Shown: in pieces, positions 6,189 through 14,112 of the stretch
How the letters are laid out: each line of letters opens with the position of its first letter
Position numbering within the stretch: the first letter of the stretch is position 1
IMG/VR virus record: IMGVR_UViG_3300049460_000128
Location: 1 to 64,000 of that record
Direction: 5' to 3' (one strand)
DNA length: 64,000 nucleotides
Notes under the pieces: model-generated
Told to the model about the DNA's origin: nothing
The model's input: only the letters and a program-made list of their open reading frames with translations
Database searches by the model: none
Position numbers and translations under genes: made by a program

Positions 6189-6247
6189 ACAAGTGTCTCC
6201 TGTTATTTTCCACCAATATAGCATGATATGGTATTTAGAAGACAAAT

Positions 6248-6275
6248 AAAAAAGCCCGCCGAAGCGAGCTTTTTT
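6248..6275 (-). terminator. intrinsic terminator ending the tmRNA operon
   Basis: AAAAAAGCTCGC-TTCG-GCGGGCTTTTTT. Confidence 0.85.
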
Positions 6276-6280
6276 GAGAC

Positions 6281-6606
6281 TTGGATGATGAGGTATGTCT
6301 CTACCCCCACCGTTTAGGCTGCTACAGCCTGACGGAACGAAGAATCGTTTGCATTTACAACGTGCCGACTTTTATTTTCGTGAATCATCGACTTTCACGT
6401 GTTGTCATCTTCGGCTTATTCACCCTGTCGAAACCAGGTCAGGCCCATCATATAAGATTCTCTCGCTTACGTCTCGCGGGATACTGCGCTTTATCCTGAT
6501 AGTGGCCAGCGAAGTTTATCATGCGCTGCTGGTCTAACCTACCGAAAATCTATATGGTGGACCTGTGGGGAATCGAACCCCAGTCCAGAATGCCTCTACG
6601 TCCAAA
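6281..6606 (-). ncRNA. ssrA: tmRNA, circularly permuted (two-piece)
   Basis: Acceptor piece ...GGACTGGGGTTCGATTCCCCACAGGTCCACCA ends at 6555; coding piece starts GGGCCTGACCTGGTTTCGAC at 6446; G3:U70 pair; tag ORF 6352-6314 = ANDSSFRQAVAA*. Confidence 0.92.
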
Positions 6607-6668
6607 TCTGTCAGTTGCCTGACCACAACAATGTAATGCGCCTATCAGGCGGGGTAAGCCCCGTCATC

Positions 6669-6750
6669 AATGCGTATTGGTTAGAATACGTTTCCCCTGT
6701 GACCGCTCGAAGTGTCACCCCTGTACTCAGTACCCTAACCAATAAACATT
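6669..6750 (-). ncRNA. candidate small structured RNA
   Basis: Long closing helix AATGTTTATTGGTTAG/CTAACCAATACGCATT with two inner hairpins. Confidence 0.5.
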
Positions 6751-6759
6751 TGCAAAATC

Positions 6760-6898
6760 GTTTAAGCGTGAAGGGAGTCGAACCCTTGAGCGCCCTGCCG
6801 CTACGTTACCGTAGTGTCTGACTCGAACAGACCACTAGGCTCTCCATGCTCTAGTATGTACTCAACCGGGAGATGCCTACCACCCACTGGACCTAAAC
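6760..6898 (-). ncRNA. tRNA-like RNA with two T-loop hairpins
   Basis: 7-bp closing stem GTTTAGG/CTTAAAC; GTCTG-TTCGAGT-CAGAC and GGG-TTCGACT-CCC hairpins. Confidence 0.6.
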
Positions 6899-6936
6899 TT
6901 TTTGCTGGTGACACATTACTGCATCACCAAGACCAC

Positions 6937-6965
6937 AGTATATGGCAATCCATACATGCGGTCAA
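6937..6965 (-). promoter_or_regulatory. sigma70-type promoter of the ncRNA/tmRNA operon
   Basis: TTGACC-17-TATACT. Confidence 0.75.
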
Positions 6966-6984
6966 GCATTATTTACCACTTTGT

Positions 6985-7890
6985 TTAATTCATATGCGAA
7001 TAATCATCTGCCATATGAGTGCGCAGCTTCTTCAAAGCCGCCACCTCAATCTGACGAACACGTTCGCATGAAATATTGTACTTGTCTGCCATCGCCCGCA
7101 ACGGCACACCAGCCCCTTCATCATTTACCAGGAAACGTTGCTCGATGATATACTGCTCGCGTTCGTTCAACTTTTCCATGTACTTCTGGAGGCCGGTTGT
7201 CTGAAGTTCAACCATACGCATACTGGACAATACGTTGGTGGGTTCCAGCGTGTCGTCACTCAGATAATGGTATACGAAGTCATCCATATCAGCACTGTCA
7301 AGGAACTGATTGGTTGGAGGCACATCGATGGAGCTATCACCGCCACGCATACGCATTTCAACTTCACGCACGTCTTCTGGTCTGACCTCCAACGCATCAG
7401 CGGCCCATTTGATCTGTTCTTCGGTCATGCTGCGCCCTACTTCCAAACGACTACGCAGGTTGAAGAACAGCTTGCGATGAGCTTTGGTAGTGAAGCTTTT
7501 CACTATGCGAGAATTGCGAATCACATAGTCCATCATCTCTGCTTTGATCCAGGGAATCGCATAGGTGGCAAAACGCACATTCTGGGCGGGATCGAAGCGA
7601 TGAATTGCTTTCATCATTCCAATACTTCCTTCTTGAACTAGATCATCTTGGCTCATGCCGTAGAATTTCAATTGACGGGCTTGGCTCATGACCAAACGCA
7701 TATAGCTATGAGCCAGTGCGTCAATTGCCTTTTGATCATTGTTTCTCACTCGTACCCACAGCGCATCTTCTTGCGGCGGGGTAAGCATGGGAAACCGCAT
7801 GGCGGTGCTATGGTAATTGTCAATGCTGCTGAGGTTTACCGTAACACCAAGGTTCAATGGCTTATTAATACCAGTAGCGTCAAGTTTCAT
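6985..7890 (-). CDS. rpoH: RNA polymerase sigma factor, RpoH (sigma-32) family
   Basis: DLVQEGSIGMMKAIHRFDP, RFATYAIPWIKAE, RpoH box HRKLFFNLR, region 4 ISCERVRQIEVAALKKLR. Confidence 0.9.
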   Translation of the reverse strand: MKLDATGINKPLNLGVTVNLSSIDNYHSTAMRFPMLTPPQEDALWVRVRNNDQKAIDALAHSYMRLVMSQARQLKFYGMSQDDLVQEGSIGMMKAIHRFDPAQNVRFATYAIPWIKAEMMDYVIRNSRIVKSFTTKAHRKLFFNLRSRLEVGRSMTEEQIKWAADALEVRPEDVREVEMRMRGGDSSIDVPPTNQFLDSADMDDFVYHYLSDDTLEPTNVLSSMRMVELQTTGLQKYMEKLNEREQYIIEQRFLVNDEGAGVPLRAMADKYNISCERVRQIEVAALKKLRTHMADDYSHMN

Positions 7891-7919
7891 TCTTATTCTG
7901 CATTATTGTAAGTTCATGC

Positions 7920-7948
7920 AGTATAGAGCAACAATCACTTGACGTCAA
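7920..7948 (-). promoter_or_regulatory. sigma70-type promoter of rpoH-like gene
   Basis: TTGACG-17-TATACT. Confidence 0.65.
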
Positions 7949-7961
7949 TGCCGTATGAATA

Positions 7962-9020
7962 TTACATGCGAGAATTTGCCTCAACGGAGATATAGTTCTT
8001 CTCTTCAGTGGTCCAGCGCACTTTGACGTTCGGGTATTTTGCCTGAATTTCATCAACGATTTTCTGCATCTTGGCACCCCATTCGTCATCCAATTCTTCC
8101 CAGTCGTAGTCTTGTTCGTCACCATCTTCAAGTTCAGCATCGACCGGAATCTGCCAACCACCCCAGTTACGAACCTCGAAACTATAGCCCGTCCCTTCTT
8201 TTGCAATATCACGCCATTCACCAGTATAACCTGAACTATACCCAAGTTTTCCAGACGACATTGCCGATTTCATCAAGGAACGAATCCGTGATAAAACGTC
8301 TTGCATTTCTTGTGGTGATGCTTTGGCGATAGCCTGTGGTTCAGCTTTTGGCTTAGGTGCTTCTACGGGTTTTGGATCAGATTGATCTTTCAAGGCAAGA
8401 TTACCCTTACCATACGATACTCGCCCACGTCCTGGCACCATTTGAGAACTAGTCCATTCCCAACGCCCCAAAGGTTGATTGGTCTCTGGATTATAGTACA
8501 TGATGACTTGATTCTTCTTACCTGAACCATAGCTATGCAATGACGGCAAGTTAGGCGCATCAATATAGGCGATTGGAACATCGCCAAAGGTTTGCTTTAT
8601 AGCATCTTTAAGCTCCCGAATTTCAGTCCAACTGGTATATTCGTTAAATTTTGGATTGGTGGGCAATGGTGGAAGTTCTTTCTTGGGCTCGGGTTTTTGT
8701 TCCACGGCTTTCGGTTCAACTTTAGCTGCTGGTGCTTTCGTCGTTGGCGCCGCTTCTTTGCCTGGTTTCTTCGCAGGCATGAACGGTTCTTTGGCCAAGA
8801 CGTATTTGAATCCACCACCGTCTGGTGTTCGGAAACCCACAATACCAACTTTTGGATCCATGTAGTAAACCGCACCACCAGCTTGTGGCTTGCTTTCTTT
8901 CCACGCGGTAGCGCCCAGCTTACGTATGCCAGCTTCAAATTCAGCTTTGGAGGAGAGGGGATTTGCGAGGTCGAACTTGTTCTTGTAGTTCGCCTCGAGG
9001 ATGATTTGATTGTAACGCAT
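7962..9020 (-). CDS. putative internal head protein (modular, Pro/Ala/Lys linkers)
   Basis: N-term MRYNQIILE; TAAATA upstream. Confidence 0.65.
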   Translation of the reverse strand: MRYNQIILEANYKNKFDLANPLSSKAEFEAGIRKLGATAWKESKPQAGGAVYYMDPKVGIVGFRTPDGGGFKYVLAKEPFMPAKKPGKEAAPTTKAPAAKVEPKAVEQKPEPKKELPPLPTNPKFNEYTSWTEIRELKDAIKQTFGDVPIAYIDAPNLPSLHSYGSGKKNQVIMYYNPETNQPLGRWEWTSSQMVPGRGRVSYGKGNLALKDQSDPKPVEAPKPKAEPQAIAKASPQEMQDVLSRIRSLMKSAMSSGKLGYSSGYTGEWRDIAKEGTGYSFEVRNWGGWQIPVDAELEDGDEQDYDWEELDDEWGAKMQKIVDEIQAKYPNVKVRWTTEEKNYISVEANSRM

Positions 9021-9057
9021 GAAATACTCCCAATTAAGAGAGTATTTATCCGTGGCA

Positions 9058-9249
9058 TCAATCTACTGATTTGATGTTTTTCAATCGTTGCTGCTTGATT
9101 TCTTCTTCACGCTGGATTCCCCAACCGATCATTTGATCAGTAAATGCCTTGCGCATTGCAGGGTTTTCACGGAACTTTTTATCAAATCGCCAGACGAATG
9201 CTCGATAGACGATTTGATAGTCAAACCAGGCAATCAAGCGAGCGATCAT
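9058..9249 (-). CDS. hypothetical protein
   Basis: Start MIARLIAW directly after upstream stop. Confidence 0.6.
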   Translation of the reverse strand: MIARLIAWFDYQIVYRAFVWRFDKKFRENPAMRKAFTDQMIGWGIQREEEIKQQRLKNIKSVD

Positions 9250-9250
9250 A

Positions 9251-9616
9251 TTATGCCACAATGTTGTGACGTTCCATTGCGGCCTGGATGGCATCAAGGT
9301 CAACATGATGCCGTGCAATCGCACGTTTCAGTTCAGACATATACTTGATGTCCCAGAACAGATTGAATTCGTTTGGCAAGTGCGGATCGCGTGCTTGCGG
9401 GAAGTCGTTCAGTTCAGTGCGCGGTTTCCAGGACTTGAATTCGTCCATGGATACAGTATGGCCACCAGCCTCATCGTCGAAGTAATAATGGATGCGTTGT
9501 TTGGCACCATCATAGCCATAGGTCTTTGCAATACGACCACATGGTAGTTCATAAAAAATACCTACGGTATTCATTGTTATCTTTCTTGCCTCTTTGGGCA
9601 TGTTGTAATTCGTCAT
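9251..9616 (-). CDS. hypothetical protein
   Basis: 121-aa ORF in operon. Confidence 0.7.
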   Translation of the reverse strand: MTNYNMPKEARKITMNTVGIFYELPCGRIAKTYGYDGAKQRIHYYFDDEAGGHTVSMDEFKSWKPRTELNDFPQARDPHLPNEFNLFWDIKYMSELKRAIARHHVDLDAIQAAMERHNIVA

Positions 9617-9675
9617 GAGACGTCATGGTTCGTCACCAGTGCGACAAACATTAACGGGATGACCCAAGTGTCAGA

Positions 9676-9960
9676 TTAGTCTCGCCACTCGCCTATACCA
9701 TCCCAATTGGATGATAACACAGTTCTGGCAACTGAGCGAGCTACTGGATGATTGAAACGTGGATCGGATATGATGGCATAGAAGACGTCCTGCATGTCTT
9801 CCAGATTTGGCGGGAGTTGTTGACCGAATTGACGTACTTCGTTTTTGAATTGAGCAATCTGCGCACGATTGTGGGTTTTAAGCACTTCATAATCGCAGAT
9901 CACACACTCCATGAGAATGAAGAAGTCGATGACGTAATATAGACGTTCCTGAGAGATCAC
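9676..9960 (-). CDS. hypothetical protein
   Basis: GTGA overlap with upstream gene. Confidence 0.65.
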   Translation of the reverse strand: MISQERLYYVIDFFILMECVICDYEVLKTHNRAQIAQFKNEVRQFGQQLPPNLEDMQDVFYAIISDPRFNHPVARSVARTVLSSNWDGIGEWRD

Positions 9961-10169
9961 AGTGTAATCAACTCCGTGGTTTCGCCTGTTTTCGGATCAC
10001 GCCACATCACCTTGCTACCAGCGTCTTGGTGGGCAAGGATCGTCGCCTGCAAGGCCAGGGCTTTGCGCACGACTTCGGTGTATGATGATGCTTCGGTTTT
10101 GTCCTTGAGACGTTTTAACCGGTCGTATGCACTTGCGGGTAATTCCAATTGAACACGCGTCTTAGCCAT
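9957..10169 (-). CDS. ribbon-helix-helix (CopG-like) DNA-binding protein
   Basis: MAKTRVQLELPASAYDRLKRLKDKTEASSYTEVVRKAL. Confidence 0.75.
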   Translation of the reverse strand: MAKTRVQLELPASAYDRLKRLKDKTEASSYTEVVRKALALQATILAHQDAGSKVMWRDPKTGETTELITL

Positions 10170-10434
10170 TGTGTTGCTCCGGCCACAATTCATTGATACG
10201 TGCGATGAACAGATCAATGTCGCGGAATACTTCGTCAGGGTTGGAGAAGGCGATGCAGTCTTCTTGACTTGACCGCCACAGTCCATATACGTTCAGGATT
10301 GGGCGATGTGCAATGGTGTATTCTTGCCCATTGTATTGGAAGTCGAAAAACGCCTCAGCATTTGGATCATATGCACCATCGCGTATGATCGTTAAGTGGG
10401 GCAGCTCCGCTTTCAACCTATCATCAATTTTCAT
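10162..10434 (-). CDS. hypothetical protein
   Basis: Start MKIDDRL; the longer ORF start runs into the tRNA-like RNA. Confidence 0.65.
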   Translation of the reverse strand: MKIDDRLKAELPHLTIIRDGAYDPNAEAFFDFQYNGQEYTIAHRPILNVYGLWRSSQEDCIAFSNPDEVFRDIDLFIARINELWPEQHNG

Positions 10435-10449
10435 AACTGCCTTTTTGTT

Positions 10450-10626
10450 AGGCACCCCGGGTGGAATCGAACCACCGACCCTTCGATTAAATATCGACCG
10501 CTCTATCGTCAAAACTATTCAACAGGTCAACAGCGGGACGTCACTCGCTATCTTGCTGTCTAGCCGTTTATTCAATTCCACCGGCGACCGTCGTCACCTT
10601 ATGTGGTACCTCTGAGCTACGGGGCA
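10450..10626 (-). ncRNA. tRNA-like RNA (Lys-UUU-like) with ~110-nt D-loop
   Basis: GCCCCG-TA-GCTC...GAGC, anticodon loop TATTTAA, GGTGG-TTCGATT-CCACC, CGGGGT; ends CCT rather than CCA. Confidence 0.7.
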
Positions 10627-10665
10627 TTGCTTGGTTAAAAGATGATTGCTCATCTCTTGAATTCT

Positions 10666-10826
10666 TGGCGTCAACTGCCGGATTCGAACCGGACGACGGA
10701 ATACACTTTTGACCTCTATGAGGCGGGTATGCCCTTACTTTCACCGTTAGGCTGTCCACTTCTGCCCATGCCATTCAGCAAAGACATATCTGCGGCGTTC
10801 GTTCTGCCAGACTGAACTAAGTCAAC
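10666..10826 (-). ncRNA. tRNA frame with anticodon arm replaced by ~105-nt insert
   Basis: Acceptor GTTGACT/AGTTGAC-G-CCA, D arm GTTC-AGTCTGGCA-GAAC, T arm CCGG-TTCGAAT-CCGG. Confidence 0.75.
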
Positions 10827-10828
10827 AA

Positions 10829-10933
10829 GTATGGCGGGGAATTGAACCTCCAGTCCAAAATGAGCAGCACCATGGCGCCGTTTCACTTGGCCCTAGTTTC
10901 CTAGGCTGCTTCCCAAAGCAGCGTCGACCATAC
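10829..10933 (-). ncRNA. tRNA/tmRNA-TLD-like structured RNA
   Basis: GTATGGT/GCCATAC stem, GGACTGGAGG-TTCAATT-CCCC T-arm, three hairpins including CCTAG-GAAA-CTAGG. Confidence 0.55.
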
Positions 10934-11087
10934 AATGTGGGTTGGAGTAACTTGGCGATTTAATCCGGGACTCTGCATTCTTGCCCGACTTCATGTTTCG
11001 CCACCTGAAAGCTAGTTTGTCTAGTCCTCACCACGGAGTCAATAGTACAGCAAACCACGGAAGTTCGCAACACTATTGACACCACAT

Positions 11088-11939
11088 TCACTTGCGGGGT
11101 TTCTTTATTGCACTGAAAAGTAGCATCAATGCAACACCGGTAAGGAACATCACCCAACTTTCAGGCTCTGGAACAGGAGTCGTAATGGGTGGAGTGACGA
11201 TTGGCGGAACAATCGGTGGAGTAATTACAATGCAGCAACCACCGCCACCACCACCGCCATTGTCGATCGGGCTCCACGGAGTGAATCCGTGCCAACCGTT
11301 ACCGCCAGGATTCACCAATGAATTGTTGGGCTCACCTGAGCCAGTAGTGATACTCCCTGGGGCAACATTTGACGCACCACCACCCCCGCCTCCGCCACCA
11401 CCTTCAGTTGGTTCTGCGGGTTGTTCAGCTTGTGCTTGAGCAACTTCAGCAGTTTCACCACCACCTTTATGTGAACCAGTAGTTACCTGGGTTTCCGGCA
11501 ACCGCTTCACACGGCTGATATTTTGGCAAATAGTTGGTACCAGGATACAAGTTTCGCCCTCGCAGTACACCAATGCTTCCTCTTTACGAGTGGGTGACCA
11601 TTTGTCACGAGTTGTTGCCAGACAGATTTGCGGCTTAGCACTCTTGCCACCAAAGTGCATATCGGTGATGGTCGACTCATATGCGTGGATGCCAGTAATT
11701 CGATCTTTCGTGATGGTCACGACTTCATCGAACTGCTTTTTCTCCAAACGCTGTTTGAACTTAGCCCGCAGTTCAGGCGAAAGATCACGATAATGATCAA
11801 TCGCATTCGAGACGGCGCCCTTGTAGGGATTGACACCTGGGTTGTCCCACGAACAGGTGTCAAGTATTACCGCTTGGGAACTGGCCATGGTCCCCAGGAA
11901 CAAAAGTCCCATCAATGCCTTAAAAAGTTTCATATACAA
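11088..11939 (-). CDS. MHFG-type PEP-CTERM surface protein
   Basis: Signal peptide, CSWDNPG, DMHFGG, Gly-rich linker, C-term VPEPESW + TM helix + KKPRK. Confidence 0.85.
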   Translation of the reverse strand: MYMKLFKALMGLLFLGTMASSQAVILDTCSWDNPGVNPYKGAVSNAIDHYRDLSPELRAKFKQRLEKKQFDEVVTITKDRITGIHAYESTITDMHFGGKSAKPQICLATTRDKWSPTRKEEALVYCEGETCILVPTICQNISRVKRLPETQVTTGSHKGGGETAEVAQAQAEQPAEPTEGGGGGGGGGASNVAPGSITTGSGEPNNSLVNPGGNGWHGFTPWSPIDNGGGGGGGCCIVITPPIVPPIVTPPITTPVPEPESWVMFLTGVALMLLFSAIKKPRK

Positions 11940-12040
11940 TTCCTCAATTGGTTGCCCTATATATCATATGGCGCAATCGAATGGTATATTAAAATTATGC
12001 TAATTCATAAAACCAAATCATCAACTATTTGATATTTGCC

Positions 12041-12069
12041 TTGATCTGGCAACCAAATGAATGTATCAT
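12041..12069 (+). promoter_or_regulatory. sigma70-type promoter with operator motif
   Basis: TTGATC-17-TATCAT; spacer ends CAACCAAATGAATG. Confidence 0.7.
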
Positions 12070-12091
12070 GTATTCATTAACTGGAGGGAAT

Positions 12092-12520
12092 ATGAAAACC
12101 ATCTCGGCAACGGTAACTCAATATCAAGCAGATGACGGCACGCCATTCGACAGCGAAGCGGCATGCAAGCTGTACGAGGATGAACTGAAACGCACCTCCT
12201 ACTGGATCGTGTACTTCAATCCAGACCTCACGGAAGGGCGGGGCACGCAGTATTCCACGGCATTCAGTGTGGTCACGCCATACGGCAAGAGTGATGCGCA
12301 AATGTGGATGACGGACTACTGCATGCAGAAACATGGTCGCCCAGTGGCATTCGTGCAAGGCGCATCGCCATGCCCAAACTGGACTCTGAGTGAGCTCGAT
12401 CGCAAAGCATACGAAGCCCACAAGGCCCGTACTCCTGATCGTTACAACCAGCACACGGTTGGCGTGTTGAAGCTGAAAGGTGACGACAAGCTGCACTACG
12501 CCTTGACCTTGGTCAAATAG
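12092..12520 (+). CDS. hypothetical phage protein
   Basis: GGAGG RBS, MKTISAT...YQADDGTPFDSEAACKLYE...PDLTEGRG. Confidence 0.8.
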   Translation: MKTISATVTQYQADDGTPFDSEAACKLYEDELKRTSYWIVYFNPDLTEGRGTQYSTAFSVVTPYGKSDAQMWMTDYCMQKHGRPVAFVQGASPCPNWTLSELDRKAYEAHKARTPDRYNQHTVGVLKLKGDDKLHYALTLVK

Positions 12521-12524
12521 TCGT

Positions 12525-12552
12525 AAAAAAGCCCCTAGGCTAGGGGCTTTTT
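12525..12552. terminator. bidirectional intrinsic terminator
   Basis: AAAAAAGCCCCTAG-G-CTAGGGGCTTTTT between convergent units. Confidence 0.85.
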
Positions 12553-12555
12553 GTT

Positions 12556-12709
12556 TGGTGGCGAGAGGAGGGGTCGAACCTCCAATGTGCTACACATTGA
12601 CAAATATGCGTGCTCGAGGATCCGGATCCAATTGGCCGCCCTACACTCGTCAACTTAGAACACTCTCCAGCTCATCGGCTGGCGTATCTACCAATTCTAC
12701 TACCCCGCC
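12556..12709 (-). ncRNA. tRNA frame with ~80-nt variable-region insert and 6-nt anticodon loop
   Basis: GGCGGGG/TCTCGCC-A-CCA, D arm with AATTGGTAGA, CCAGC-CGATGA-GCTGG, GGAGG-TTCGACC-CCTCC. Confidence 0.75.
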
Positions 12710-12712
12710 TAA

Positions 12713-13062
12713 AATGTAATGGTGGATGACCGTTGGTGTGCTATTACGCCCAATGCTCAACGGGTCTTGTACGACATCGCGCTTACTCTAATCCCTTTAC
12801 CCTCAGCGCTTACCTAGGGGCCGTTATCCTTCGGCATCCTGTAGTCATGGGCTACGCCCCATAACATGATGACCAATTTCCTGCCAGCTGGGAAATTGTT
12901 GCCATCTTATCGTACAAACTGTACTTGTCCTTCCCCGGTGGATTATGCGCGATGATTGCCACCATCTGAAGCTGGGATCGCTTCCGCCCTTATCCACTTT
13001 GCAACTCTTTAAAGGATGGCTGCTTCTAAGCCCACCTTCCAAAAGTCATCCACCATTACATT
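12713..13062 (-). ncRNA. structured RNA containing a split mimic of 23S rRNA H43/H44 (GTPase-associated centre)
   Basis: Perfect 18-bp terminal helix; GGCTTAGAAGCAGCCATCCTTTAAAGAG (13032-13005) and GCGTAATAGCACAC (12749-12736). Confidence 0.85.
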
Positions 13063-13063
13063 C

Positions 13064-13280
13064 ATGTGCTTTGTTGGGCACCATCCGCCACCCCCATCGG
13101 GTCAGCATCCACAGCGGGATTACTAGGGACTCGAACCCTTCTTCGCTTGACTGTACGGGCCAAGCTAGTACGCTATCATGAACCATCTGCATCACTTACC
13201 GCGAATAGGCGATGTTTCCCGTTCATGCTTCCCAAATTAATGGTTTTTCACGTAGACGACTGATGTCCAACAAAGCACAT
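13064..13280 (-). ncRNA. structured RNA with T-loop hairpin
   Basis: 14-bp closing helix ATGTGCTTTGTTGG/CCAACAAAGCACAT; AGGG-TTCGAGT-CCCT; starts just after promoter. Confidence 0.7.
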
Positions 13281-13287
13281 ACATGAC

Positions 13288-13316
13288 ACTATACTGCTGG
13301 TTCAGCTACCAGTCAA
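13288..13316 (-). promoter_or_regulatory. sigma70-type promoter of ncRNA operon
   Basis: TTGACT-17-TATAGT. Confidence 0.75.
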
Positions 13317-13340
13317 GCATTCTTTTCTGGTAGCTGAACC

Positions 13341-13700
13341 TTAAATGTCCCACGGATTAGCCCAACGCTGATATTTGCGATCATCGATGAAGTCCCGCAG
13401 GTCTGGCTCATAGTCGGGATTCTGGAGGTGACGCACCAGTTCGTGCTCGTTATGAGCCCTTGCCGAATTCTTGCCACCCTTCACAGCATACCAACCATAG
13501 TATTTCTTGCTGTCGCGATGAAAGCGCCAGTAGCCTTCATCCAACTCTTTACCAGTCTTCCAAATGCGTGGGAAAGCCCACACGGTATCATGGCGACCGG
13601 AATTACCATTCCACTCATCTGGGATGGTGGTCAGGTACCTTTTAATGTTGCTGCTGCGCCCGATGCGCTTTTCGCCTTTACGGCGGATGGTTCGACTCAT
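13341..13700 (-). CDS. small basic hypothetical protein
   Basis: MSRTIRRKGEKR...; GGAG RBS inside a hairpin. Confidence 0.75.
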   Translation of the reverse strand: MSRTIRRKGEKRIGRSSNIKRYLTTIPDEWNGNSGRHDTVWAFPRIWKTGKELDEGYWRFHRDSKKYYGWYAVKGGKNSARAHNEHELVRHLQNPDYEPDLRDFIDDRKYQRWANPWDI

Positions 13701-13723
13701 GTTAGATCTCCAGTAATGGTAAC

Positions 13724-13762
13724 CTAACGAGTCGATTTCTCCTTGTATGCGTACACTTTCAT
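13724..13762 (-). CDS. putative 12-aa leader peptide
   Basis: GGAG RBS, MKVYAYKEKSTR-TAG; stop overlaps hairpin covering next RBS. Confidence 0.45.
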   Translation of the reverse strand: MKVYAYKEKSTR

Positions 13763-13808
13763 GTTTCGCTCCAGTTTGCCGCCAATCAGGCTAGCAGGTT
13801 AAAAAAAT

Positions 13809-13942
13809 GCACTGACTTTATCCTCCGCGGCGTATCAATCCTTTCGGACTAACCCACGAATGTGGGTGATCGGCGCGCTGCTATGGTCAACCCATAGTGA
13901 GGTGCTACAAGTCTAGCTTGGGTGGCATAACCTCCCCAGTGC
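13809..13942 (-). ncRNA. candidate structured RNA
   Basis: GCACTG/CAGTGC closing stem followed by U-tract; multiple hairpins. Confidence 0.55.
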
Positions 13943-13947
13943 CAAAG

Positions 13948-14074
13948 TGGATGCTGAATTTACCGCGTATCGACCTAGCTGGCTTACGGGGAGCAACTCA
14001 GTTACTCGCCACCACTGGTCACGTGGTGCAACAATTCTAGCATGGGGCAAACACTACGTCAGCCCCTGCATCCA
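13948..14074 (-). ncRNA. candidate structured RNA
   Basis: TGGATGC/GCATCCA closing stem right after promoter; multiple hairpins. Confidence 0.55.
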
Positions 14075-14083
14075 ACATGTTCA

Positions 14084-14112
14084 ATAATACGGCAAATGGT
14101 TCATTGAGTCAA
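14084..14112 (-). promoter_or_regulatory. sigma70-type promoter
   Basis: TTGACT-17-TATTAT. Confidence 0.7.

Follow-up and report, generated by a model that had tools for sequence, protein, structure and literature searches.

The minus strand of the 64-kb window analysed here, a part of the 297-kb genome of an uncultured phage, encodes an RNA (RNA3.2, 12718..13057) that, as read from sequence and predicted fold, reproduces the 58-nt L11-binding GTPase-associated centre (GAC), 23S rRNA helices 42-44, on top of a 13-bp stem. The RNA is located in one of four small predicted operons of structured non-coding RNAs. The alignments place it in a large RNA family that occurs in phages and mobile tRNA arrays and had not been annotated before; we found no published description of this family. 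The phage host is probably a betaproteobacterium of the Oxalobacteraceae. The best explanation, which we credit with an even chance, is that the RNA operons supply the GAC-like RNA as a putative decoy or sponge of the factor-binding site, and the other tRNA-framed RNAs as cargos.

In RNA3.2 (folding z-score -4.2), the 13-bp closing helix is formed by 13057-13045 with 12730-12718, and is followed by a helix 42-like UUGG/CCAA pairing. Helix 43 and the junction occupy 13038-13004 (G1062 corresponds to 13032), and helix 44 occupies 12749-12737. A 254-nt insertion domain (13003-12750) leaves the fold at the A1088/A1089 bulge. Counted by eye, some 43 of the 47 core bases match a real 23S. The RNA shares with the 23S GAC (E. 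coli 1051-1108) the loop sequences of helices 43 and 44 and the UUUAAAGA junction, and the U1060·U1078 mismatch, A1077, the G1087-C1102 pair and the covarying triple 1072·(1092-1099) are all kept. Unlike its ribosomal counterpart, the GAC-like RNA is a stand-alone molecule of 115 to ~440 nt, found in tRNA arrays and outside rRNA genes. A domain is always inserted at 1089/1090, position 1101 is A rather than U, with a G·A at 1090'-1101, and helix 42 is a plain covarying stem. As this helix 42 extension lacks a conserved kink-turn, the mimicry probably does not extend to uL10 binding.

An exact 27-mer matches 26 IMG/VR contigs, and a degenerate pattern retrieves more than 120 IMG/VR contigs among the matches listed; none of the listed matches to either is a real 23S gene. 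By blastn, the RNA is present without annotation in XacN1, XaC1, pf16, UNO-G1W1, ME3, 4_4572, Milchi, RSP15, GAP32 and CBB, and also in Astolliot, where the match is by blastn alone. The family set comprises 98 distinct copies, and pairs and bases were counted over 99 sequences, one of which duplicates the window copy. The retrieval patterns fixed many helix 43 bases, so that the invariance of these bases is partly a retrieval artefact. Pairs 1055-1104 and 1054-1105 are formed in 99/99 sequences, and the closing helix covaries through all four Watson-Crick pair types. Three pairs at the base of the insert are formed in 96/99, 95/99 and 90/99, whereas shifted registers give about 50%. All sequences have U1060, and at position 1078 there are 87 with U and 10 with C among the 99. 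The triple 1072:(1092-1099) covaries as CCG (64), UUA (29), UUG (4) and CUA (1; n=98). In alignment A5, 94.2% of cells are paired (68.6% when shuffled), and the covariation score of 0.698 compares with 0.195 for shuffled alignments and 0.14-0.18 for slid registers. The family thus appears to keep the rRNA fold, with helices 42-44, the U1060·U1078 mismatch and the 1072·(1092-1099) triple. The copy in L145, one of two related metagenomic phages, has changes in universally conserved junction and helix 44 loop bases (CGAUAAUGAG, GUAGUU), and strict GAC mimicry is therefore not kept everywhere.

The family is closely associated with tRNA genes. A same-strand tRNA lies within 30 nt of 43/98 members and within 2 kb of 69/98, and tRNAs at the family loci are on the same strand in 624 cases and on the opposite strand in 4. 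One complete member is found within a chromosomal Acidithiobacillus tRNA array.

The RNA units of the window are spaced by only 2-50 nt, as in tRNA-array transcripts, and would be cut apart by host tRNA-processing enzymes (RNase P, 3' trimming, CCA addition), possibly together with RNase III. The released GAC-like RNA would most likely adopt the fold of the rRNA domain. It would then work off the ribosome, imitating the translation-factor binding site as a decoy or sponge and binding free uL11 and/or a GAC-docking protein. The latter might be a RelA-type sensor, a translational GTPase of low abundance, or a toxin or defence effector directed at the GAC. The other tRNA-framed RNAs would be scaffolded cargos. 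Given the great abundance of uL11 and the major GTPases, the RNA would have to reach high copy numbers for simple titration to work. Catalytic toxins are poorly inhibited by substrate decoys, unless these are tightly bound. Bacterial toxins against helix 44 and the sarcin-ricin loop exist, and Tre23, which ADP-ribosylates GAC helix 44, sets a precedent for GAC-targeting toxins (PMC8661411). ToxI and phage pseudo-ToxI establish in principle that a host toxin can be neutralised by a phage RNA that resembles the toxin's natural RNA partner. The GAC-like RNA is not known to counter any toxin or defence system, and the link is hypothetical.

The insert is present at the 1089/1090 bulge in 98/98 members, with a length of 46-358 nt, and is hypervariable, so that it, rather than the GAC core, could be the functional part. 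The core would then be a stable, self-folding scaffold for an insertion domain with targets unrelated to the ribosomal factor site. The inserts fall into many unrelated classes with conserved sub-motifs of their own, such as CACCCCGNANNNGGUAAGG and GACCCUUAGAGCAUUUG, and the tRNA frames in the same window hold inserts as well, which favours this possibility. However, a scaffold would not need near-identity to rRNA at the exposed factor- and drug-binding bases, and A1067 is kept in 81/99 and A1095 in 95/99 sequences. Moreover, the sarcin-ricin-loop 12-mer AGUACGAGAGGA or a loop variant recurs in the inserts of 8 family RNAs from at least three lineages, which a scaffold role does not explain; outside these inserts, the 12-mer occurs only in true 23S genes in the 1.56 Mb of fetched loci. 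Members with this hairpin would copy both halves of the factor-binding site. We consider the scaffold reading to be distinctly less probable than the decoy, at about one chance in five.

Stringent-response sensors had been suggested in the first-pass annotation as targets of decoy RNAs. Among the RNAs of the region, the GAC mimic is the only possible candidate for such a role. Ribosomal RelA activation is L11-dependent, and relC mutants are relaxed. The GAC-like RNA might thus sponge uL11, or form a complex of uL11, RNA and tRNA-like RNA, and so blunt RelA activation and the stringent response when tRNAs are uncharged or cleaved during infection. The conserved L11-binding fold determinants, and the location of the RNA inside tRNA arrays or, in the window, beside tRNA-like RNAs, fit this idea. 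Nevertheless, we regard it as rather improbable, because uL11 is stoichiometric with ribosomes and tightly bound, which may leave only a small free pool, because the sarcin-ricin-loop hairpins would be unexplained, and because no alarmone-linked phage gene lies nearby. No proteins related to ribosomes, alarmone metabolism or toxins were found adjoining the blocks.

On the ribosome, contact of the GAC with the tRNA elbow is established. A GAC module that binds phage or host tRNAs by such a contact (A1067) could help as a chaperone, in processing or as a protective cap within the tRNA-array transcript. The close same-strand tRNAs and the mostly conserved A1067 are in line with this, but the GAC on its own is not known to bind free tRNA, and some members, the window copy included, have no canonical tRNA nearby, which makes the proposal quite unlikely. 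Least credible, and very improbable in our view, is a DNA-level element or relic with no RNA-mimic function, either captured host 23S rDNA with a small intron-like mobile insert or a homing or recombination site: the insert starts after U and ends in G, its excision restores the contiguous rRNA sequence AAAGAGU-GCGUAAUAGC, and some arrays contain HNH endonuclease genes, but the strong covariation in the flanking helices and the insert base implies that selection acts on the RNA, the inserts have neither the size nor the constancy of group I or II introns, with no intron family scoring even at E up to 5, and the opening bases of the insert are paired with its closing ones and not with the 5' exon. 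Phages of unrelated hosts also share a signature particular to the family (A1101, G1089-U, UUUG), and repeated capture is unlikely, since this signature differs from the gammaproteobacterial 23S of the hosts.

Extra-ribosomal RNAs that copy the rRNA site of a ribosomal protein are known from the ribosomal-protein operon leaders (L10, L1, L20, S8). These are cis-acting 5' leaders of the protein's own operon with partial resemblance to rRNA, whereas the GAC-like RNA is an almost base-for-base copy, is phage-borne, lies among tRNA genes and does not precede any ribosomal-protein gene; none of the Rfam leader families matches it. GOLLD and ROOL are large structured RNAs beside phage or prophage tRNA genes, and the T4 tRNA cluster contains the stable RNAs C and D; functional work on these RNAs is recent at most. 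They are similar to the RNAs described here in being stable non-tRNA RNAs in or beside phage tRNA clusters. We know of none that copies an rRNA domain. No sequence or structure match to GOLLD or ROOL was found, and no Tequatrovirus/T4 record was among those listed by blastn for the helix 43 segment.

The four promoter-led blocks of structured RNAs lie between 6247 and 14112 on the minus strand. All elements of the minus-strand RNA clusters that had been described within 8 kb were recovered at their positions. The best sigma-70-type sites (10/12 matches, 17-nt spacer) are located at 6965-6937 (block 1, TTGACC and TATACT), 13316-13288 (block 3, TTGACT and TATAGT) and 14112-14084 (block 4, TTGACT and TATTAT), and ORF-free stretches begin directly after each of them. 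As a class, promoter-like sites are not enriched across the region (18 observed, 16.8 expected). The block 1 promoter (in both L144 and L145) and the block 4 promoter are well conserved in the relatives, and the block 3 promoter is conserved in L145 only at the -35 and part of the -10 element. Terminators were located for block 1 (6275-6248) and, by direct reading of the sequence, for block 3 (12552-12525). ARAGORN detects no canonical tRNA in the whole 64 kb, in agreement with the earlier statement that none of the RNAs is one, and none of the RNAs of the four blocks is a decoding tRNA.

Every block is kept in synteny in the two related metagenomic phages, L144 and L145, except that RNA1.1 is missing from L145. 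Most RNA blocks are more conserved than the neighbouring protein: RNA identity is 77-91% for most blocks, 52-67% for three tRNA-like RNAs and ~45% for block 4, and adjacent protein identity is 62-67%. Each well-aligned RNA shows compensatory pairs, and random decay without covariation was not seen. Folding z-scores of the region's RNAs range from -4.3 to +0.6. Taken together, the promoters and terminators at the edges, a tmRNA that passes the Rfam cut-offs, the absence of canonical tRNAs, and the conservation with compensatory pairs argue that the blocks are operons of stable structured RNAs under host-type (sigma-70-like) promoters. As to the broader proposal that these RNAs are aimed at the translation machinery, two of them do relate to it, the tmRNA and the GAC copy; for 8/10, no Rfam or rRNA similarity points to a target.

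Block 1 comprises three units, of which the first is tRNA-like, the second a hairpin and the third a two-piece tmRNA. RNA1.1 (6760..6936), which is present in L144, has two T-arm-type hairpins (6832-6816 and 6787-6771). RNA1.2 (6669..6750, z-score -4.0) is a long hairpin with two ACAGGGG motifs, and its base pairs show 3 compensatory changes and 0 broken pairs in the three phages. The permuted tmRNA (6247..6645) was identified by both Rfam (RF04321, 93.5 bits with a cut-off of 47; RF01850, 87.6 with a cut-off of 84) and ARAGORN, which places the tag ORF at 6352-6314 with the product ANDSSFRQAVAA. The acceptor piece has its CCA end at 6555, the intervening segment covers 6554-6447, and the coding piece starts at 6446. 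From its sequence, the tmRNA looks functional. tmRNA genes are reported in 2.3% of phage genomes, and 53/133 unique tmRNA structures are two-piece (PMC9004378). Phage two-piece tmRNAs, such as that of the Methylophilales phage Melnitz (PMC9004378), share with the block 1 tmRNA the permuted ssrA, the tRNA-like domain, an acceptor stem with G3·U70 and a tag ending in AA. In contrast to them, the block 1 tmRNA is of the betaproteobacterial type (RF01850), is predicted to be co-transcribed with two other structured RNAs, and has a tag that differs in each of the three related phages, yet is intact.

Block 2 consists of a leader RNA and three tRNA-framed RNAs. Its promoter (11070-11042, TTGCGA, 17 nt, TACTAT, 8/12 matches) is weak but conserved; it was read from the sequence and alignment, and is not in the promoter-scan listing. 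The leader RNA2.0 (10934..11038) is conserved with 84% identity, and its UCGGG/CCCGG helix has compensatory changes in both relatives. Neither the leader nor this promoter had been noted in the first-pass annotation; nor had a hairpin in the spacer at 10637-10658. In RNA2.1 (10829..10933), which is tRNA-like, the acceptor stem is 7 bp long, D- and T-arms and a long variable arm are present, and a GAAA tetraloop stands where the anticodon loop would be. RNA2.2 (10666..10826) has a tRNA-like frame in which CCA is encoded; its insert, roughly 95 nt long, contains the invariant CCUAACGGUGRAAGUAAGGGCAUAC. In RNA2.3 (10450..10626), which is directly followed by a gene starting at 10440, the insert of ~105 nt is a long helix around the invariant GAGUGACGUCCC, and there are 10 compensatory pairs in the three phages.

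Block 3 contains, besides the GAC mimic, a long-helix RNA and a tRNA-like RNA. RNA3.1 (13063..13281, 219 nt, z-score -4.3) has a 15-bp closing helix and an internal T-arm-like hairpin, and 70 pairs compared with L145 show 10 compensatory, 7 one-sided and 0 broken changes. RNA3.3 (12556..12709) has a variable-arm insert of ~80 nt, a 6-nt 'anticodon' loop and an encoded ACCA end; it scores 31.5 bits with the Rfam tRNA model (cut-off 29), and has 10 compensatory pairs.

The idea of scaffolds and cargos is borne out in its architecture, as the RNAs are framed by tRNA-type ends (acceptor stem and T-arm, some with encoded CCA) or by closing helices of 13-15 bp, with variable or conserved cargo in the place of the anticodon or variable arm. 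An acceptor stem and T-arm 'top half' that frames a foreign domain in the place of the anticodon arm is also found in the tRNA-like domain of tmRNA and in bacterial Y RNAs (YrlA, PMC4201824). Here, in contrast to both, several tRNA-framed RNAs are arrayed head to tail like tRNA genes; the cargos are unrelated to Ro-binding stems, and no Rfam Y-RNA model matches the tRNA-framed RNAs. A role as decoys for anticodon nucleases, as had been suggested, is unlikely, since U33 is absent and the anticodon loops have given way to the GAAA tetraloop, have been reduced to 6 nt, or differ between the relatives. In block 4 (13801..14112), the promoter is followed by 276 nt of structured sequence (14076-13801) with a T-run at its end; the block is partly conserved in L145, with 9 compensatory pairs.

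Block 3, the third of four promoter-led stretches of structured RNAs on the minus strand (blocks 1-4), contains an RNA that reproduces the L11-binding domain of 23S rRNA, also called the GTPase-associated centre (GAC; helices 42-44, E. coli numbering). The 5' part of this RNA, RNA3.2 (12718-13057), consists of one strand of a perfect 13-bp closing helix, UUGG/CCAA (helix 42), A1057-GGUG-GGCUUAGAAGCAGCC-AUCCUU (helix 43) and UAAAGAGU. There follow 254 nt, and then GCGUAAUAGC-ACA (helix 44). The loop and junction sequences of helices 43 and 44 (GGCUUAGAAGCAGCC, UUUAAAGA and GCGUAAUAGC) are found at 13038-13004 and 12749-12737, and in a permissive Rfam scan, the stretch corresponding to helix 43 (13000-13038) is matched by the LSU rRNA model. 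In a blastn comparison, the GAC part is 94-97% identical to real 23S rRNA. Very likely, RNA3.2 mimics the structure of the GAC and belongs to a widespread family that is linked to tRNA arrays.

In a blastn search with the window, Xanthomonas phage XacN1 and the Pseudomonas phages UNO-G1W1 and pf16 turned out to carry the same split motif without annotation. In the latter two it lies within tRNA clusters, on the tRNA strand; no tRNA gene was found in the inspected stretch around the XacN1 motif. A short query added ME3, 4_4572, Milchi, RSP15, XaC1, GAP32, CBB and Astolliot, the last as a blastn match only. A true 23S fragment in Paenibacillus phage Pd_22F, which was also matched, was used as a control. 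An exact 27-mer occurs in 26 IMG/VR contigs, and a degenerate pattern has at least 120 matches in this database. None of the pattern matches listed is rRNA, because helix 44 never follows directly 3' of helix 43. The family collected in this way comprises 99 sequences, 98 of them distinct, since one duplicates the copy in the window.

The family differs from the rRNA domain in that the GAC is never a contiguous 58 nt, and is always split by an insert of 46-358 nt (median 169) between G1087-A1088-G1089-U and UUU-G-G1091. The first three bases of the insert can pair with the three bases ahead of UUUG in 96, 95 and 90 of the 99 sequences, with all types of base pairs, compared to about 50% in shifted registers. 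Around the insert, the fold of the domain is kept. The pairs 1055-1104 and 1054-1105 are formed in every sequence (n=99), and beyond them the stem extends over about nine covarying pairs. U1060 is invariant (99/99), the position opposite, 1078, is U in 87 and C in 10 cases, A1077 is kept, and C1102 is present in 98/99 sequences. The tertiary triple 1072·(1092-1099) is CCG in 64, UUA in 29, UUG in 4 and CUA in 1 of the 98 distinct members, the same three-way covariation as documented for the rRNA domain. The invariance of G1087 and A1088 is not informative, as both were fixed by the retrieval pattern; many other positions of helix 43 were fixed as well, and unbiased information comes only from the free positions and the 3' half. 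In an alignment of 25 members with short inserts (A5), 94.2% of the cells of the named structure are paired, against 68.6% after shuffling, with 158 against 49 two-sided changes, and a covariation score of 0.698 against 0.195 for shuffled and 0.14-0.18 for slid alignments. A covariance model (R1) performs well on short inserts, breaks on the 254-nt insert of the window, and does not separate the family from rRNA, as it scores true 23S genes at 47-63 bits. Judged by covariation, the fold-defining features of the L11-binding domain are thus shown to be selected for in a stand-alone RNA within tRNA-type transcripts.

Could the split domain be a ribosomal RNA in disguise? A leader of a ribosomal protein operon can be dismissed, since the neighbours are tRNA genes, tRNA-like RNAs and phage genes without an assigned function, and no Rfam leader matches. 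A group I intron, or captured rDNA, would account for an interrupted rRNA sequence, and was rejected because of the size of the insert, the absence of a model match and the insert's own closing helix. Inserts can be as short as 46 nt, compared to at least about 200 nt for a group I intron, their first bases pair with their own last bases and not, as in the P1 helix of such an intron, with the 5' exon, and the Rfam scan did not report Intron_gpI at E values up to 5. Moreover, unlike the domain in a 23S rRNA gene, the copies are flanked by tRNA or phage genes and not by rRNA sequence. Across hosts, they share the signature A1101, G1089-U and UUUG, which sets them apart from the sequence of the gammaproteobacterial hosts, AAAGAAAGCG, and argues for a lineage of its own rather than for repeated capture of host rDNA.

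The association with tRNA genes is close. A canonical tRNA on the same strand lies within 30 nt of 43 of the 98 distinct members and within 2 kb of 69, and the tRNAs at family loci number 624 on the same strand and 4 on the opposite one. When prokaryotic genomes, one for each species, were scanned with a pattern that does not match ordinary rRNA, 18 loci were obtained. Variant 23S genes account for about half of these, and the others are family members, in tRNA arrays of metagenome-assembled genomes from several phyla and, in one case, of the chromosome of Acidithiobacillus sp. M4-SHS-6. The Acidithiobacillus RNA (L152 3531-3860 (+)) is a complete member, has a closing helix of 17 bp and is located between tRNA-Val and tRNA-Trp of a 38-tRNA array, which shows that the family extends beyond phages.

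The inserts are hypervariable. The insert class of the window (…GACCCGUUGAGCAUUGG) recurs in XacN1, ME3, RSP15, GAP32 and CBB, and a second class (CACCCCGNANNNGGUAAGG) is found in pf16, UNO-G1W1, 4_4572 and Milchi. Milchi carries both classes, in two RNAs arranged in tandem (L033 2430-2670 (+)). A tRNA-Met gene and an HNH endonuclease gene come immediately after these, and a CDS annotated as 'hypothetical protein' overlaps them on the opposite strand. Many of the short inserts (around columns 100-110 of A5) have a hairpin loop GGUAAnAG or GUUAAUAGC, which recalls a second copy of the helix 44 loop.

Alignment of the insert class of the window revealed AGUACGAGAGGA, the universal sarcin-ricin-loop sequence, on a stem within six long inserts. 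Altogether, eight members have such a hairpin in the insert (L039, L043, L046, L060, L061, L142, L008 and L115); in L039, it lies at about 7120-7170 (+), inside the insertion domain. L008 (AGUACGGGAGGA) and L115 (AGUACUAGAGGA) carry GGGA and UAGA loop variants and represent independent lineages with other lower stems, so that at least three lineages with different lower stems have the hairpin. Outside these inserts, all occurrences of the strict 12-mer in the fetched DNA (1.56 Mb) are within true 23S genes. RNA3.2 of the window has no sarcin-ricin motif on a stem (AGUA, GNRA tetraloop closed by C-G, and GA, with bulged G). The class A motif GGGGAAGGACAAGUACAGU could not be made to fit as a relative of the sarcin-ricin loop. 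On the 50S subunit, the binding site for GTPase factors is made up of the GAC and the sarcin-ricin loop, and some family members thus copy both of its halves.

A stand-alone, near-exact copy of a universally conserved functional centre of the ribosome has apparently been overlooked in well-known genomes. Cultured phages with the copy in tRNA clusters include pf16, GAP32, CBB, XacN1, RSP15 and ME3, at least one chromosomal tRNA array has it as well, and its conservation, as seen from covariation, extends to a tertiary base triple. Rfam holds no model for the family. No description of a phage mimic of the GAC or the sarcin-ricin loop was found in the literature covered, which comprised few subscription journals, and the family goes unmentioned in the surveys on tRNA arrays and on structured RNAs of viruses. 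A catalogue of 10,006 viral structured RNA candidates reports no overlap with rRNA predictions, and may contain the family as an unnamed candidate. Judged against Rfam and this literature, the GAC mimic represents a class of RNA that is genuinely new. It is also a natural example of engineering, with a large domain grafted into the GAC fold.

All the elements listed in the first-pass annotation of the window are present. The top three promoter-like sites, at 6965, 13316 and 14112 (-), have 10/12 matches, a 17-nt spacer and an ORF-free stretch behind them. As a class, promoter-like sites are not enriched (18 observed, 16.8 expected), and the weight of the three sites comes from their position and their conservation in relatives. 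The RNA promoters also have an extended motif in common, AATGCTTGAC, upstream of and including the -35 hexamer (6970-6960, 13321-13311 and, in the related phage L145, about 925-940). A site of the same kind (7948-7920), with a TTGAC-type -35, a 17-nt spacer and a TATACT -10, precedes the sigma-factor gene.

From sequence reading, block 1 consists of RNA1.1 (6760-6936), RNA1.2 (6669-6750) and a tmRNA (6247-6645), block 2 of RNA2.0 (10934-11038), RNA2.1 (10829-10933), RNA2.2 (10666-10826) and RNA2.3 (10450-10626), block 3 of RNA3.1 (13063-13281), RNA3.2 and RNA3.3 (12556-12709), and block 4 of 13801-14076, all on the minus strand. RNA3.1 has a perfect closing helix of 15 bp. Folding z-scores, relative to dinucleotide shuffles, are strong for RNA1.2 (-4.0), RNA3.1 (-4.3) and RNA3.2 (-4.2). 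RNA2.3 and block 4 have moderate scores, and those of RNA2.0 and RNA2.2 are close to zero. The spacing of neighbouring units is as narrow as in tRNA arrays, at 2-50 nt, and it is reasonable to assume that RNase P, 3' trimming and CCA addition would release them. A small GC-rich hairpin, GACGGGGCUUACCCCGCC, lies between RNA1.2 and the tmRNA (6640-6668 (-)). It is specific to the window phage and absent from its relatives L144 and L145.

ARAGORN reports a single gene in the 64 kb, a permuted tmRNA ('tmRNA*'), and no canonical tRNA. The tmRNA matches RF04321 with 93.5 bits (cut-off 47) and RF01850 with 87.6 bits (cut-off 84). The acceptor piece is upstream of the coding piece, with the CCA end at 6555, a 108-nt intervening segment and the coding start at 6446. 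The acceptor stem, GGGCCUG/CAGGUCC, is followed by ACCA, and the G3·U70 alanine identity pair and the T-arm are present. The tag ORF (6352-6314) is in frame, with a GCA resume codon and a stop, and encodes ANDSSFRQAVAA*. L144 and L145 each have a permuted tmRNA above the Rfam cut-offs, with tags (ANDNSYKVAAYA and ANDVNANDSSFRQAVAA) that differ, yet are intact. Phage tmRNAs, including two-piece ones, have been documented earlier (PMC9004378), and the tmRNA of the window is another instance of this known type.

RNA2.1, RNA2.2, RNA2.3 and RNA3.3 read as 7-bp acceptor stems with a T-arm and a GTTCRANYC loop. T-arm hairpins were located at 12583-12567 and 10476-10460; the T-stem of RNA2.2 has only 4 bp. 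In RNA2.1, which also has a D-arm, the anticodon loop is replaced by a GAAA tetraloop. In RNA2.2 and RNA2.3, the acceptor, D and T elements are retained, and inserts of about 95 and 105 nt, whose cores are invariant, take the place of the anticodon arm; RNA2.2 has an encoded CCA. RNA3.3 keeps the cloverleaf frame, with a conserved arm of about 80 nt instead of the variable loop, and a 6-nt 'anticodon' loop, CGAUGA (CAUUGCU with A33 and C37 in the relatives). It alone of the four exceeds the Rfam tRNA cut-off (31.5 bits, cut-off 29; 12559-12709, with about 80 extra nt in the variable region). RNA2.1 (24.2) and RNA2.3 (21.7) score below it, and the permissive scan gives weak tRNA-like matches at 10829-10933 and 10460-10517. 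With lengths of 105-177 nt, the four RNAs are longer than canonical tRNAs (70-95 nt). They are not decoding tRNAs, as they lack a 5-bp anticodon stem and a 7-nt loop with U33 and purine 37. The framed RNAs are best described as variants of tRNA-like modules, comparable to the tRNA-like domain of tmRNA and to bacterial Y RNAs.

The first-pass annotation proposed that tRNA ends and long closing helices serve as scaffolds for cargo RNAs, such as decoys for anticodon nucleases. The scaffolds exist, and two of the RNAs relate to translation; the anticodon-nuclease decoys have to be given up, because anticodon loops are missing or not conserved in the tRNA-framed RNAs. Apart from the GAC, the cargos resemble neither rRNA nor any Rfam family. 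RNA1.1, RNA1.2, RNA2.0, RNA3.1 and block 4 match no Rfam family at E values up to 5. In a blastn-short comparison of all window RNAs with real rRNA operons, the GAC part was the sole match, so that the other cargos are not recognisable rRNA mimics. An nhmmer search with each RNA against about 140 fetched loci (about 1.3 Mb) gave generic T-arm matches only, and a 24-base RNA2.2 pattern had no match in a metagenome scan. In 94 fetched loci, there are 218 T-arm-type hairpins (5-bp stem, TTCRANY loop) outside the ARAGORN tRNA and tmRNA calls. tRNA-framed RNAs that are not tRNAs may be common in phage tRNA arrays, and the orphan hairpins, together with the framed cargos, suggest a layer of tRNA-scaffolded RNAs that systematically escapes tRNA finders. 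In Ralstonia phage RSP15, an RNA of about 235 nt directly 3' of the GAC-like RNA (L034 2810-3045 (+)) has a 12-bp acceptor-like helix on a perfect T-arm (GCGGGUUCGAUUCCCGC), a design like that of the tRNA-framed cargo of the window.

The gene order of the window is shared with two Logan contigs, L144 (SRR9616339) and L145 (SRR23826734). In most blocks, the RNAs are 77-91% identical at the nucleotide level, against 62-67% amino acid identity of the adjoining protein. Block 2 as a whole is 86% identical; RNA2.2, RNA2.3 and RNA3.3 singly reach 52-67%, and block 4 about 45%. Random decay without covariation, which would have spoken against functional RNAs, is not what the comparison with the relatives shows. 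In consensus folds of only two or three sequences each, there are 3 compensatory pairs and no broken pair in RNA1.2, 2 compensatory pairs in RNA2.0 (both in the UCGGG/CCCGG helix), 10 in RNA2.3, 10 in RNA3.3 and 9 in block 4; the 70 pairs of RNA3.1 include 10 compensatory, 7 one-sided and 0 broken ones. RNA1.1 is absent from L145. The GAC copy of L145 (1300-1800 (+)) has changes in normally invariant bases, with the junction CGAUAAUGAG and the helix 44 loop GUAGUU, which could reflect decay or a changed specificity. When the whole region was compared with 50,697 phage records by megablast and blastn, only the GAC segment was matched, and the other RNAs had no relatives there. A 12-codon ORF, MKVYAYKEKSTR, at 13724-13762 (-), upstream of a 119-aa gene (13341-13700), is nearly invariant at the nucleotide level, together with its flanks, between the window and L145. 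It may encode a leader peptide or be an RNA element.

What the GAC-like RNA does for its carriers can be approached from its likely fate. It would be excised together with the tRNAs, would fold as the rRNA domain does, and might then act as an off-ribosome decoy of the factor-binding site that binds uL11, a protein docking there, or both. Toxin-neutralising phage RNAs that act by mimicry are known. The Tre23 toxin ADP-ribosylates helix 44, and several toxins act on the sarcin-ricin loop (PMC8661411). We give the decoy model as a whole about an even chance. Against it stand the abundance of uL11 and the main GTPases, the obligatory and variable insert, and the divergence of the L145 copy. Alternatively, the insert, and not the GAC core, could be the real effector. 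More speculatively, and less likely than not in our view, the modular replica of the factor site in phages and mobile tRNA arrays (the GAC, in some lineages with the sarcin-ricin loop), released from tRNA-type transcripts and present alone or as an RNP with uL11, may trap a docking host protein and so represent a new class of RNAs for counter-defence or host takeover. The trapped protein might then be an abortive-infection toxin that targets the ribosome, an alarmone synthetase of the RelA type or a regulatory GTPase, and the neighbouring tRNA-framed RNAs might be further members of the same tool set. If uL11, a GTPase, RelA or a toxin turned out to be bound by the GAC-like RNA, this would introduce a new principle into phage-host conflict, the mimicry of an rRNA domain. 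'tRNA arrays' would then gain a second, non-tRNA function; to our knowledge, they have so far been discussed only as devices for codon supply or against anticodon nucleases. Several laboratory phage-host pairs carry the GAC-like RNA, which makes the model directly testable.

The window is the first 64 kb of the 296,594-bp IMG/VR contig IMGVR_UViG_3300049460_000128, from a large phage with 46% G+C and nearly all genes on the minus strand, among them a class I ribonucleotide reductase and an RpoH-like sigma factor (6985-7890 (-)). No close relative was found among cultured phages, and an IMG/VR search with the sigma-factor protein matched the source contig only. Pfam and PHROGs scans of 20 neighbouring ORFs did not identify ribosome-, alarmone- or toxin-related genes. 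A 283-aa protein (11088-11939 (-)) is homologous to MHFG-family PEP-CTERM proteins; it has two phage homologues, and every other match is to a PEP-CTERM protein from Duganella or Pseudoduganella. The protein may be located at the surface and derive from the host and, together with the betaproteobacterial type of the tmRNA, points to a probable host among the Oxalobacteraceae. Another phage protein (18190-19203 (-)), with a PAAR motif and a weak NlpC/P60 match, may be a tail-tip or cell-wall-piercing protein.
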